Source: Amoeboradix gromovi X-113 (Eukaryota; Fungi; Sanchytriomycota). From it: a DNA stretch of 8,587 nucleotides. Below are positions 2,828 through 8,200 of this stretch, in pieces. Position 1 is the stretch's first letter, and each line of letters starts with the position of its first letter. Below the pieces are notes generated by a model. That model saw only the letters and a program-made list of their open reading frames with translations, was not told where the DNA came from and ran no database searches. The stretch lies in contig JADGIF010000437.1 in the NCBI GenBank assembly GCA_018985225.1, positions 1 to 8,587 on the forward strand, given 5' to 3'. Both the position numbers and the translations under genes were made by a program.

Positions 2828-4687
2828 ATGTCATCCGTTACTGCTTCCCAAAAAAATGTCATTGGGAACTACAGATTGGAGAAAACAGTTGGTTCAGGAA
2901 CATATGGTAAAGTTAAGTTAGCGAAGCATATTATCACGAATGACAAATTTGCTGTTAAAATTATAGATAAATCAAGTATTTCAACTCAAAAACAAATAGC
3001 GCGTATCCAGAGAGAAATTAGGTTTTTAAAGTTGCTACAGCATCCAAATATAGTTAAGGTTTATGAAGTTTTTGAATCTCCAAATCAGATATTTATAGTT
3101 ATGGAATACATTCAAGGTGGTGAACTTTTTGATTATATTGTAGCTCATAAAAGAATTAAGGAAAAGGAAGCGCGCACGTTTTACAGGGAAATATTGAGCG
3201 CGGTGGACTATTGCCACCGTAACGGTGTAATTCATAGAGATTTAAAGCCAGAAAACTTACTATTAAATGACAACAAGAGTATGAAGATTATAGACTTTGG
3301 ATTCGGGAATATTTTCTTTCCAGATGGACTTTTAGACACCTTTTGCGGTTCACCATTCGTATTTTTAATTAACTTAGTATGCAGCACCTGAAATGATTCT
3401 TGGAAAGAAGTATGAAGGTCCTGAAGTAGACATGTGGTCACTTGGAGTTATTTTGTTCGCACTATTATGCGGGCATTTACCTTTTGATGATGAGAATATT
3501 AAGGAGCTGTACAAAAAGATATCTGGAGGACAATACATTATTCCAAGTTATATTTCACCTGGTATCTTGTCATTAATTTAGAGGCTAAAAACCTAATTCA
3601 ACGTCTTATTACCGTAGATCCTAGGAAAAGAGGCACATTGCCTGAAGTTCTACAGCATCCCTGGTTGAATGAAGGTTTCGATGGACCGCCGGAGAATCAT
3701 TTGCCTAAACGACCAACTATTACTGATATTAAACTATTAGACCCTGAAATACTCACAAGAATGGCTGCTTTTGGACATACTACAGAGGAGATTCAAAAGG
3801 CTTTTGAATCTGATCAATCGCAGAATAGACCAAATCCAATAAGATCAACCTATTTTCTGCTTCAAGAGATGATGGAGAAAGAGCGCAGAAAGTCCAGTGC
3901 AGGCCAGTCCCAAGGCACATTATCCAATGAAGAAAGGAAGAGCACTACTTTATTTGCAATTACAGAAGACAAACCACTGTCGCCTAATAACAACATAGAA
4001 AATGCGAAGAACAACTTTCCTTCTATGCCGCAAGTTACACCAGAAAGAGATAGAGGTCGCAGAGCATCTGCATTCGATACCAGAACACCCCAGCCTGATA
4101 GACAACGGAACTCAACAGCGGACGGTACGAAACAACAAGTTACCGTCTCTTCTCAAAATCTTTCGCCTACTAACGGACCAAAATCGGCTCCTGTACAGAG
4201 TGTAAACACTTTGCAAGTCCCTACATCTGAAGACAAAGGTAGAAGACATTCAGAAACAACTATAGAGTCTGATACGAGCGATAGGAGTTTAAATGACGGG
4301 TCGGATCCTGCTATCAAATCATTAACTAGCTGGTTCTTGAACAATCAAACAACTTCGAACAAACAGCCAGCAGAAATAATTGGGGAGGCAGTAAGGGTTT
4401 TAAAAGAAAATGGGATTCATTATGCTATTGATGGCTATTCAATTGAATGTGTTCAAGACGAAAAGCTCACAGAACAGGAATTCCAGTCATATCAATCAAA
4501 AGATATAAGAAGAGGGTCCATCATGGCCATACCACCGCAAATGTCGAAGAATGCAGTAGTATTTAGAATTGAAGTTGGAAAAGTGCCCAAGATAAGCATG
4601 CACGGAATTACATTCAAGAGAATCAGTGGTGGAGTATGGAACTATAAAAAGATTTGCAACAAGATTGTGCAGCAAATGAATTTATAA
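2828..4687 (+). CDS. MARK/Par-1/Kin1-family (AMPK-related, CAMK group) Ser/Thr kinase, 606 aa; spliced as join(2828..3358,3378..3561,3582..4687); kinase domain + UBA-like region + disordered linker + C-terminal KA1 domain
   Basis: Motifs [19 protein letters not shown] and DFG are present. Removing two tiny introns restores the activation loop DTFCGSPF|YAAPE and the end of the domain, ISP|[29 protein letters not shown]. The KA1-like C-terminus is [41 protein letters not shown]. Exon lengths 531+184+1106=1821 nt keep the frame. Confidence 0.95.
3359..3377 (+). other. 19-nt spliceosomal intron (phase 0) in the kinase gene
   Basis: GTATTTTTAATTAACTTAG. GT...AG ends, branch-like TTAAC next to the 3' TAG. 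Removal gives the conserved GSPF-YAAPE with no indel. Confidence 0.95.
3562..3581 (+). other. 20-nt spliceosomal intron (phase 1) in the kinase gene
   Basis: GTATCTTGTCATTAATTTAG. Removal creates the codon G|AG (Glu) and joins ISP to [17 protein letters not shown], the conserved kinase subdomain X-XI region. Confidence 0.95.
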
Positions 4688-4706
4688 ATAAATTAAATAC
4701 TTTATT
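4687..4706. terminator. Back-to-back polyadenylation signals of convergent genes (AATAAA + at 4687-4692; AATAAA - at 4701-4706)
   Basis: Each gene ends TAAATAAA on its own strand, and only 18 nt separate the two stop codons. Confidence 0.65.
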
Positions 4707-5480
4707 TAGGTGTCTTTCATAGATTCTTTGATTTCTTTATTTATAAATGATTTAACATTAAGTTCTTGTTGAATTTCTTGAGTCGATTCTCTTCTCTGCC
4801 TCCTTAAGTCCTTAATGTTAGTTCGTAATTCCATGTTCTCCTTTTCCAGATGTTTAACTCGCAAAAACAACTCGCTGTTCTCGATGTAGTTGTCATCTGT
4901 TTGAGTTTCTTGATTTTGAAAACTTGAAAATTCATCAGATATGGAGCTTTTAGATTCTGATCTGTTCCAGTTCATCAGTCGAGAAACAGGTCTCTTCTTC
5001 TTATCGATTTCCTGTTGCTCTGAAGCTTGCGATTTCTGCTTCTCCTTCTATATAAGTTATAACTACTTTATCAAAATATGCTTGCATATCAAGAGAGTCA
5101 GAAAATGATTGAGGTCTAGAACTACTGCTAGATCTTTTTTGCCGTGTTATAGTGGGACTTGCTGATACAGTCTGTTCTATCTCGCTATCTGTATAGTTTC
5201 CCCGTGATTGCCTTGACAAAAAGGAGCTAGACCCATCATTACTTTTTCTGTGTTCACTCTTAAATTCAGATGAAGTGCTTTGATGTAGTTCTATCTTACT
5301 TTTCCTTGTATTCAGGCTTCCCTTAGAGTTTTTTGAGGAGTTGTCATTATACTCTACTGTAGGCTTTCTCTTAAGTTTTAGATCTTTGTTATTTTCAACT
5401 TCTTTAGATTCGTTCTTATTGTAATCTTCAGATTTGAACGCGAACAACTTGTTCATGTGGCTTTTTTCAGGCTTTATCAT
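4706..5480 (-). CDS. Hypothetical Ser/Lys-rich disordered protein with a TQT motif and C-terminal coiled coil, about 251 aa; complement(join(4706..5047,5067..5480)); frame is also open upstream to ATG 5564
   Basis: The ORFs 5001..5564 and 4706..4975 join in frame on removing a 19-nt GT-AG intron, giving ...MQAYFDK|KEKQKSQASEQQEIDKKKRPVSRLMNWNRS.... I chose the start at MIKPEK because the preceding 28 codons differ in composition and abut the upstream gene's stop; the start is uncertain. Confidence 0.75.
5048..5066 (-). other. 19-nt spliceosomal intron (phase 0)
   Basis: Minus strand GTAGTTATAACTTATATAG has the same GTA...TAAY...TAG design and size as the kinase introns, and its removal fuses two frameshifted ORFs. 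No homology control is available, so it is less certain than the kinase introns. Confidence 0.85.
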
Positions 5481-5564
5481 TGAAAATCTGGAATACCATT
5501 TAGCATTAAAGATAGCGGATATCAGAATGCCATTAAACCAAGGTGTAAATAGGTAAACAGTCAT

Positions 5565-6791
5565 TTATTCTTTTGATTTCAGATCCCTCCTGACTAAAGT
5601 TTGATGTTGATGGCTTCTGTTCAATGTCTGCATCAGTATTTCACTGCTTGATTCTTTAGACCTTAAGAATCTGACCTCGTTCCATAATACCTTGTTTCTT
5701 TCCCGCAGCTCATCCACGGTATCGTTTTGCTTAATTATTGCATCATCGTACTCTCTAACTTTTGTGGTCAATGCTTCGTTCAACTTCCAAAGTTGGCCTA
5801 CTAGGGCGTTTGACATAACTAAAAGATCTTCCGTTTGGCATTCCTGATTAACTGTCGTACTTTTTTGAAAACTTAGCAACAGTTCCTCGTCTGTCTGTGT
5901 CATCATTTCATTGAATTGTTTGTTAATCGCTTCAAACACATCAATAGCTGTCTGGATTTCCTTATCCACCAGCAGTCGCTCTTCTGTTTCAACTAGTTCT
6001 ATTGGACTTTTCTTCCTTGTGGATTCTTTTTCAAATAATTCGTCCATTTCCTCTAAAGATACTTTGATCCCGTCATTTATTGATATTTCAACATCAATAT
6101 TACCCTCAAACGACTCACGTATATTTCCTGATACAAACTTGACTGAGTCTTGTGACCTGGGTTGAACAAGACTGTCAGTTAGATAGCTCAATTTTCTCAG
6201 AAATTGATCAGTGGGATCATTACTATCTTTGAGGTTATTATTTGAAGCGGTTTGATGATTTCTCTGCGCAAGACTATTTAGCTCATCTATAATGTTAACT
6301 ATTTCTTTGTCAGTAGCTGTCTTCAGAATCGTTTTAGCTCTTGTAACCGGTGCAACGCCTAGGTACGGCACCAAATAGTCATATGAGACATATTGCTTAT
6401 CTTCCTCCCTTACACTAGGTGTGGATATTACTGGCTGTGTGTTCTCTTCTTGTTCTCTCGTCTGCAACAGGTTTTCTAAATCTTTTAGGCTCAAGTTACC
6501 AGATTCTTTTACATTTTGTTGCGAAGTTGTCAAGGATATCTTTGAAGAGTTGGGTGTACTTTTAACTACTTCCTCTATCAGTCTCATATTAAAATGTGGT
6601 TGTATATGCACCGATTTAACTTTACGTTCCTTTCTGTTAGGAACCAGCGTTCTTTTAGTGACATCTTCATTTCTTTTTCTATTGCTCAATTTGGAAAATA
6701 ATGATGTTGATTCCTTGTCTACAGCTTTATCCAAAACTCCCTCTTGAACAGTGCTCTGTCGTGAGCTTGTTTTTGAGTAAATCGCGCTCAT
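5565..6791 (-). CDS. Hypothetical 408-aa protein; disordered N-terminus, three spaced QT motifs, C-terminal coiled coil
   Basis: Long ORF in AT-rich DNA with ATG and TAA. Heptad-like C-terminal region LVGQLWKLNEALTTKVREYDDAIIKQNDTVDELRERNKVLWNEVRFLR. AATAAA overlaps the stop. No family recognised. Confidence 0.8.
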   Translation of the reverse strand: MSAIYSKTSSRQSTVQEGVLDKAVDKESTSLFSKLSNRKRNEDVTKRTLVPNRKERKVKSVHIQPHFNMRLIEEVVKSTPNSSKISLTTSQQNVKESGNLSLKDLENLLQTREQEENTQPVISTPSVREEDKQYVSYDYLVPYLGVAPVTRAKTILKTATDKEIVNIIDELNSLAQRNHQTASNNNLKDSNDPTDQFLRKLSYLTDSLVQPRSQDSVKFVSGNIRESFEGNIDVEISINDGIKVSLEEMDELFEKESTRKKSPIELVETEERLLVDKEIQTAIDVFEAINKQFNEMMTQTDEELLLSFQKSTTVNQECQTEDLLVMSNALVGQLWKLNEALTTKVREYDDAIIKQNDTVDELRERNKVLWNEVRFLRSKESSSEILMQTLNRSHQHQTLVRRDLKSKE

Positions 6792-6832: not shown

Positions 6833-7849
6833 TTATAAACTCTCTATATTCGACGGTGACACCCCAAAGCTTTCTAAGTCGTTCGAGAGTCGCTCAACAT
6901 GAATTGTTAATCTTTTATTTTCAGTTCTCAGCACTTCAACCTCGGTTCTCATTTCCTTTAATTGCGTAAACAGCTCTTGGTTCATTGTTGTAAGCATAGA
7001 ATCTCTGTTCAATGCTGACTCCGACTGTATGACTGCTCTATCTACTCTCTGTGGATTGTTTAAGGATCCTATATCGGTCATATTACTGTTGCCATGAGAA
7101 GGACTTTCCGTTCTGTTTCTACTAAGCACATCTTGTAGTGAATTTAATGAATGATGCATTCCTGTAAACATGCTGTTAGGTCTTGGTTCGGTCACATATT
7201 TGTTTTGTGTTTCGGGGCGAGTGGATTCAAGCGACTGCTTCGGAGCCAATCTCGCGTTAAGTCTATTTACTCTACTAGCTGTCAAAGTATAATATCCATC
7301 ACCTAGCACGTCTTTGTCACTGCTTTGAGATCGTAGCGATGGATCATCTTTGTTTCTATTCATTGATATCCCAGAATTTGTGTCTGTTACTAAATTTCTA
7401 TTCTTTGATGTTAATGATATGTGAAGATTTGGAGTAGAAAAGAATCCATGATCATCGTGAAATGAACTGCTTTTTGTTGATCTATTTAAATCAGCCAGAC
7501 TAGCAGAAATTAACGGTTCAAATCCGGGGCCACTAACATTATGCAAGGAAATAAATAAACTTTTATCATAGGGACTTTTCCTTACCAGTGGACTAGAATC
7601 AACATCCATCGGTTCATTTTTGAGTATTTTATGTGCAATTTTAGTAAGAAGAGGAGTGCGTTTAGTCATATATAGTTTATCAGGACCATTCCGCGTGTAT
7701 CTGACAGTTCGAGATATTGTATTTCCAGCCAAATAATCATTTACTCTAAGCTCCTCTAACGAATACTTATCGTACCCAGAGCAGCCGGTAATACTAAGAA
7801 GTCTACCATCCTCGAACGGAACTGATTGAAAAGTACCAGTCTGAATCAT
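6833..7849 (-). CDS. GLEBS-motif (Nup98/Nup116-like Rae1/Gle2-binding) protein with C-terminal coiled coil, about 338 aa from MIQTGT (frame open to 7906)
   Basis: N-terminal LLSITGCSGYDKYSLEELRVNDYLAGN matches the Nup98-type GLEBS pattern (IT.M.EY..KS.EELR.EDY). No FG repeats. C-terminal heptads ELFTQLKEMRTEVEVLRTENKRLTIHVERLSNDLE. Confidence 0.75.
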   Translation of the reverse strand: MIQTGTFQSVPFEDGRLLSITGCSGYDKYSLEELRVNDYLAGNTISRTVRYTRNGPDKLYMTKRTPLLTKIAHKILKNEPMDVDSSPLVRKSPYDKSLFISLHNVSGPGFEPLISASLADLNRSTKSSSFHDDHGFFSTPNLHISLTSKNRNLVTDTNSGISMNRNKDDPSLRSQSSDKDVLGDGYYTLTASRVNRLNARLAPKQSLESTRPETQNKYVTEPRPNSMFTGMHHSLNSLQDVLSRNRTESPSHGNSNMTDIGSLNNPQRVDRAVIQSESALNRDSMLTTMNQELFTQLKEMRTEVEVLRTENKRLTIHVERLSNDLESFGVSPSNIESL

Positions 7850-8200
7850 GGAGACCAGAGAAAAGTGGCTTGTTGCACGAATTGTGAGTAAAATTAATTG
7901 ACACATAAGTTTGGATTAATCCCTAATTCCAGTCCTAGTTGGAGGCTGGTTGGACTAGACTAATCTAGCCCTTGTGGGATTAGTTTAACCAAAAAAAACC
8001 CTAATTTTAAACTGCTTTATGTAGTATTTGGGTAGCCATAGGCATAATTCTATGTTTCCAAAATTGTTTTTTCAGAAGATTATAATAAATACATCGTGAC
8101 AATGTGTAATTTGCTCATAAAAAGGATGCCTAGCAGAGTGTGACACTAAATAAATGTTCAAAAGCATTCATCGCTTTTTGACATCAATACCACTGTAACA

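Follow-up and report, generated by a model that had tools for sequence, protein, structure and literature searches.

Are the three segments of 19 to 20 nucleotides that interrupt two genes of Amoeboradix gromovi spliceosomal introns, and does the rest of the genome carry introns of the same kind? The sequence studied here, referred to as the window, is a stretch of 8,587 nucleotides in contig JADGIF010000437.1 of A. gromovi X-113 (assembly GCA_018985225.1). From the comparisons below, it is very probable that sanchytrids, a group of alga-parasitising fungi, shrank ordinary introns to 19-21 nucleotides. The assembly has 10,549,678 bases and a G+C content of 36.4% in a 115-kb sample, beside the published 10.5 Mb and 36.27% (PMC8371127), and consists of 1319 contigs versus the 1167 published for A. 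gromovi. Its TPPP protein has 180 amino acids when counted from the second methionine, and the A. gromovi TPPP has been reported to have 180 amino acids (PMC10459994). Outside sanchytrids, the CLC channel and the kinase encoded in the window both have Paraphysoderma as their best named relative, and the kinase matches a Sanchytrium tribonematis protein at 92%, with which it also clusters in EukProt.

Putative introns in the window

The exons and putative introns of the two interrupted genes are as follows.

2828-3358, plus strand: exon 1 of a Kin1/MARK-type kinase gene, 177 codons (Pkinase, E 1e-53)
3359-3377, plus strand: intron 1, 19 nucleotides, phase 0, splitting F/Y of CGSPFYAAPE; predicted branch A at 3372
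3378-3561, plus strand: kinase exon 2 (Pkinase, E 3e-9; 93-95% identity with relatives)
3562-3581, plus strand: intron 2, 20 nucleotides, phase 1, an ancestral fungal intron; predicted branch A at 3576
3582-4687, plus strand: kinase exon 3, including the C-terminal KA1 domain (E 4e-16) and the stop codon; 66-76% identity with relatives
5067-5456, minus strand: exon 1 of a protein without a Pfam match (40% over 92 amino acids to L031 exon 1, E 2e-10)
5048-5066, minus strand: intron 3, 19 nucleotides, phase 0; predicted branch A at 5053
4706-5047, minus strand: exon 2 of the same gene, a conserved C-terminal stretch (61% over 108 amino acids to L031)

Excising 3359-3377 and 3562-3581 leaves one 606-codon Kin1/MARK-type frame with Pkinase and KA1 domains; the exons were searched individually, and joining was used solely for frame checks. 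When the Paraphysoderma ortholog was used for spliced alignment, with intron length free between 10 and 250 nucleotides, exactly the junctions of introns 1 and 2 were selected. Retention of introns 1, 2 and 3 would lead to a stop within 10, 6 and 21 codons, respectively. The original prediction had placed three introns here, exact in sequence, length and strand, and its claim that excision restores the kinase motifs is borne out by the single frame and by the alignment. It had further stated that two of the introns interrupt strongly conserved kinase motifs, which is true of intron 1, situated in an invariant motif, but not quite of intron 2, situated in a conserved yet more variable stretch.

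The true introns could instead be longer and use more distant GT and AG dinucleotides, for example 37 nucleotides for intron 1 and 35 for intron 2. Frame-compatible alternative pairs are indeed available, and additional in-frame AGs lie just downstream of intron 3. However, conserved kinase residues would be lost with the longer versions, the free-length alignment rejects them, and the range of 22-52 nucleotides shows no motif excess, which leaves this explanation with a very slim chance.

The original prediction had found no other introns, and the CLC channel gene and two further minus-strand genes, the other three complete genes of the window, likewise showed none. A fourth intron joining the open reading frames at 5565-6791 and 5001-5564 was ruled out, as their L031 orthologs are separate genes. 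Another GT-AG candidate, of 23 nucleotides (2499-2521), falls between genes and has no A at position -6. The CLC gene (29-2335) is arranged head-to-head with the kinase gene in the window, whereas in L031 (2583-4931) and L032 (778-3114) it is found on the strand of the kinase, 40-80 nucleotides upstream, indicating a local inversion. The minus-strand proteins at 5565-6791 and 6833-7906 have no Pfam match over the cut-off, and are syntenic and 39-47% conserved in L031.

Intron 2 is an ancestral intron shortened in place

The orthologous kinase was taken from three metagenomic relatives, L031, L032/L033 and L116; a scan of JGI metagenomes gave no close relative. The Paraphysoderma protein was aligned to the DNA of each relative and each outgroup with intron length left free. 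Intron 2 was found at the same codon and in the same phase in six of the seven outgroup fungi, where it spans 43-217 nucleotides (Paraphysoderma 70, Gonapodya 217, Zopfochytrium 43, Phlyctochytrium 70, Cladochytrium 50 and Obelidium 57), and this common position agrees with the earlier claim that the window carries spliceosomal-type introns of a fungal lineage. In sanchytrids the same intron has 20 nucleotides in the window and in L031, and 19 in L032 and L116; despite the difference between 19 and 20, the same frame is restored in each, and only by removal. The S. tribonematis kinase protein, judged from the protein only, ends in an intron 2 read-through of the same shape. These alignments, the strongest evidence in this study, indicate that intron 2 is an ancestral spliceosomal fungal intron reduced in place. 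The kinase gene holds this ancient intron, shrunk at least two-fold, together with a probably new intron, intron 1, of the same format.

The comparison with relatives also bears on whether the segments are frameshifting insertions, from sequencing or amplification errors or in pseudogenes, that mimic introns. The genome was obtained by whole-genome amplification (PMC8371127), and splicing is deduced here from DNA. Yet the same positions are occupied by different sequences in independent metagenome assemblies, and the motif described below is 19-fold in excess over the genome. Moreover, the protein of kinase exon 1 is 91-95% identical between the window and the sanchytrid relatives L031/L032 (73% for Paraphysoderma), whereas third codon positions are merely 51-58% identical. 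The relatives largely refute the insertion explanation, to which we assign a negligible probability.

Intron 3 has a counterpart among sanchytrid relatives only. At the corresponding site, the syntenic L031 gene contains a 19-nucleotide intron that differs in sequence, and both flanking exons match this L031 ortholog, from which the putative start methionine was assigned. The exon 2 stretch is probably a coiled coil.

Intron 1 is patchily distributed among sanchytrids

Intron 1 is present in L116 as a 19-nucleotide segment, 17 of whose 19 nucleotides are identical to those in the window, but is absent with an exact junction from L031, L032/L033 and S. tribonematis, and its position is empty in all seven outgroup fungi. 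In the tree, the window, L031 and L116 form one group without internal resolution. A gain within sanchytrids is the simplest reading of the distribution on this tree; sliding or repeated loss may also account for it. We have also observed near-neighbour introns at the CGSPF motif, 10 nucleotides upstream of the intron 1 position in five fungi and 6 nucleotides in Blastocladiella britannica (L118-L123; in L120 around 1003-1074). Such clustering may reflect a hot spot or sliding.

Anatomy of the introns

We have collected 29 supported introns, of which 15 have 19 nucleotides, 9 have 20 and 5 have 21, with an A+T content of 78%. They begin with GTA at +1 to +3 in 29 of 29 cases and end with AG in 29 of 29, although the methods looked for GT-AG ends only, and one filter, unlike the homology alignments, also imposed GTA and the A at -6. 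T occupies both +5 and +6 in 25 of the 29 and -3 in 27. The branch region has A at -10 (24/29), Y at -9 (28/29), T at -8 (29/29, imposed by no filter), A at -6 (29/29) and Y at -5 (29/29). The format is thus a 6-nucleotide donor (GTAnTT), a linker of 3-5 nucleotides, a 6-nucleotide branch motif and a fused 4-nucleotide acceptor. The branch motif is of the yeast type, would be able to pair with U2 and is fused to the acceptor; its use as a branch site is predicted.

The predicted branch A is nucleotide 14, 15 or 16 of the intron, always 6 nucleotides from the 3′ end. Because it is fixed at -6 in all 29, the lariat loop would be 14-16 nucleotides rather than the 10-14 given originally for the distance from donor to branch, though far below the roughly 50 nucleotides needed by the human B complex. 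In intron 3, which fits the consensus from -10 to -1, the branch A would accordingly be nucleotide 14, and the TAAC lying upstream would not supply it.

A sharp size class of 19-21 nucleotides across the genome

A refined consensus, built in part on the very introns to which it applies, has 268 matches at 19-21 nucleotides in the whole genome versus 14 for a reversed-pattern control, a 19-fold excess. At 16-18 nucleotides it has 6 matches versus 17 for the control, and over 22-52 nucleotides 111 versus 164, with a small tail at 22-24 nucleotides. When only donor and acceptor patterns were specified, with a free gap of 0-30 nucleotides, 81 of the first 100 matches were of 19-21 nucleotides and none was of 17 or 18. 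With a flat prior on lengths of 10-300 nucleotides, an ab initio model peaks above noise at 19, 20 and 21. In 30 other kinase domains, spliced alignment with length free between 10 and 120 nucleotides yielded eight introns, all of 19-21 nucleotides, and called no frameshift. The pattern counts cover one 3′ layout, and the free-length alignments gave no longer introns. Introns of this format have a floor at 19 nucleotides, and a longer class with this motif is absent; the sharp genome-wide length mode that had been anticipated is found at 19-21. Since the strict pattern captures 9 of the 21 supported introns outside the window, we estimate roughly 600 introns in the genome, within a range from several hundred to over a thousand.

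The three homology-supported introns of 21 nucleotides (L004, L005 and L019), a length that keeps the frame, all contain an in-frame stop. This may fit a need for retained introns to be visible to decay pathways, or the small sample and easier detection of such introns. A near-identical 24-nucleotide intron-shaped sequence occurs on 12 contigs (C67, C489, C590, C659, C678, C695, C722, C818, C859, C1021, C1038 and C1040), and a near-identical 36-nucleotide one on three (C423, C500 and C519). The 24-nucleotide element may be a mobile intron resembling introners, or else an intron carried by a transposon or a multicopy family.

Spliceosome inventory and a possible mechanism

The original prediction had suggested an inventory of snRNAs and spliceosomal proteins. 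Rfam models identify U2 (102 bits) and U6 (65 bits) in the genome, as well as a divergent U1 candidate (37.8 bits, E 2e-7, under the Rfam cut-off), and U1-70K, U1C, Luc7, SF3B2, Cwc25 and Isy1 are present. Slu7, Prp18, SF1-HH and Aquarius-N gave no match over the cut-off in a genome about 92% complete, in searches that had no eukaryotic positive control and in which the N-terminal part of SF3B1 was equally blank. As SF3B1 should be essential, these blanks may reflect divergence and cannot be read as losses. A canonical U2 20-mer has no match within 3 mismatches at the Rfam U2 locus (C363:3739-3933). Three near-identical 20-mers resembling the branch-pairing region of U2 lie at C383:11468, C656:20323 and C856:3309, and may be extra U2-like copies or a repeat.

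Might these segments be intron relics that mostly stay unspliced, or be removed without a spliceosome, by Ire1/HAC1-like cleavage or ribosomal bypass? Ire1-type introns of about 20 nucleotides occur in filamentous fungi. They have, however, CNG/CNG cleavage sites in hairpin loops rather than GT-AG, and all supported introns here end in GT and AG. Microsporidian short introns splice poorly (PMC6349667), and splicing efficiency may be low in sanchytrids too. But the GT, the AG and a U2-type branch motif are invariant in these A+T-rich introns, retention would truncate conserved kinases, and spliceosome genes are retained; relics or non-spliceosomal removal are accordingly improbable. With high confidence we regard the segments as ordinary U2-type spliceosomal introns, real and spliced, which Sanchytriomycota have compressed into one fixed, minimal format.

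In human, the B complex needs about 52 nucleotides between donor and branch, and 35 nucleotides abolish its assembly on a test substrate (PMC6692369). With a distance of 13-15 nucleotides here, the human B-complex geometry cannot hold, so the earlier argument that the introns are too short for the usual simultaneous U1/U2 geometry stands. The further idea of a modified or length-measuring spliceosome is not established, many U1, U2 and branching components being retained. We suggest that the major spliceosome would remove the introns as lariat loops of 14-16 nucleotides. Donor and branch would then be engaged sequentially or with trimmed contacts, given that the U1 and U2 pairing sites are about 2 nucleotides apart in a 19-mer. 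The acceptor would be set by its fixed distance to the branch A, whereby Slu7 and Prp18 would become dispensable, and the narrow sizes would result from deletion bias against a steric floor. Yeast can dispense with Slu7 and Prp18 where branch and acceptor are close together. We see roughly even chances for these last three steps, on engagement, acceptor choice and size. It is rather doubtful whether one can go further, to a ruler spliceosome for 19-21 nucleotides that has kept the U1 snRNP and dropped Slu7, Prp18 and SF1, assembles outside the usual simultaneous U1/U2 geometry and cannot splice longer introns, in a lineage that is still gaining introns of this format (intron 1 and possibly the 24-nucleotide element).

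Comparison with known tiny-intron systems

Tiny introns are already known as a kind. The original prediction had rightly cited Stentor and nucleomorphs as precedents, but its list was incomplete, lacking Mikrocytos (16-17 nucleotides), myxozoans (22-27), Dicyema and microsporidia (about 25). Stentor coeruleus has introns of 15-16 nucleotides, and Slu7 and Prp18 were not found in it (PMC9505925); in the sanchytrid genome these two proteins gave no match over the cut-off, with SF3B1 equally blank. Like those of sanchytrids, Stentor introns start with GTA, end with TAG, are narrow in size and have the branch A, predicted in sanchytrids, 6 nucleotides from the 3′ end (nucleotide 10 in introns of 15, nucleotide 11 in those of 16), a common feature that points to a shared structural constraint. 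The sanchytrid introns are 4-5 nucleotides longer and retain a clear branch motif of the yeast type that is missing from Stentor, and the lineages are unrelated.

Introns of chlorarachniophyte nucleomorphs have 18-21 nucleotides and those of Mikrocytos mackini 16-17 (PMC10245619). Both resemble sanchytrids in size class, narrow range, conserved sequence and reduced genome, but the sanchytrid introns reside in a fungal nucleus of 10.5 Mb that has about 7,000 genes and has retained many U1 components, whereas in Mikrocytos the spliceosomal proteins identified number just 17-19 and U1 was not found (PMC10245619).

Microsporidia are likewise holomycotan parasites with very short GT-AG introns, about 25 nucleotides long in Encephalitozoon cuniculi (PMC6349667). 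Microsporidian introns number a few dozen and are often 5′-biased and poorly spliced, the short ones at under 20% (PMC6349667), with one 76-nucleotide exception, in contrast to hundreds at 19-21 nucleotides in sanchytrids. Sanchytrids are sister to Blastocladiomycota (PMC8371127), so that their short introns have an origin separate from those of microsporidia. Myxobolids and Dicyema, with median intron lengths of 22-27 nucleotides (PMC13644364), are also parasites with introns shortened at conserved positions; their splice motifs are reduced, whereas sanchytrid introns are shorter and their motifs stronger and position-locked. Sanchytriomycota are a new lineage and a further independent origin of tiny introns, in fungi, and 19-21 nucleotides is below any fungal intron class that we found reported. 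Near-minimum spliceosomal introns have thus arisen independently in true fungi, near the model yeasts and in a culturable host-parasite system, which makes the lower limit of intron size testable.

The introns are missing from current annotations

In titles and abstracts, a coverage outside which most subscription journals fall, we found no publication on sanchytrid introns or splicing, and for this lineage the intron class is very probably unreported in print. Default minimum intron lengths are 21 in STAR (alignIntronMin) and 20 in HISAT2. For the A. gromovi genome paper, proteins were predicted with TransDecoder on contigs, and introns and splicing are never discussed (PMC8371127). The suspicion that the introns are unannotated thus proved correct, an open reading frame finder having been applied to genomic contigs. 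Public sanchytrid proteomes, which are used in phylogenomics, are truncated at several hundred introns. In EukProt the sanchytrid kinases end inside introns: one member has 187 amino acids, the length of the window open reading frame that reads into intron 1, and the Sanchytrium kinase fragment has 244.
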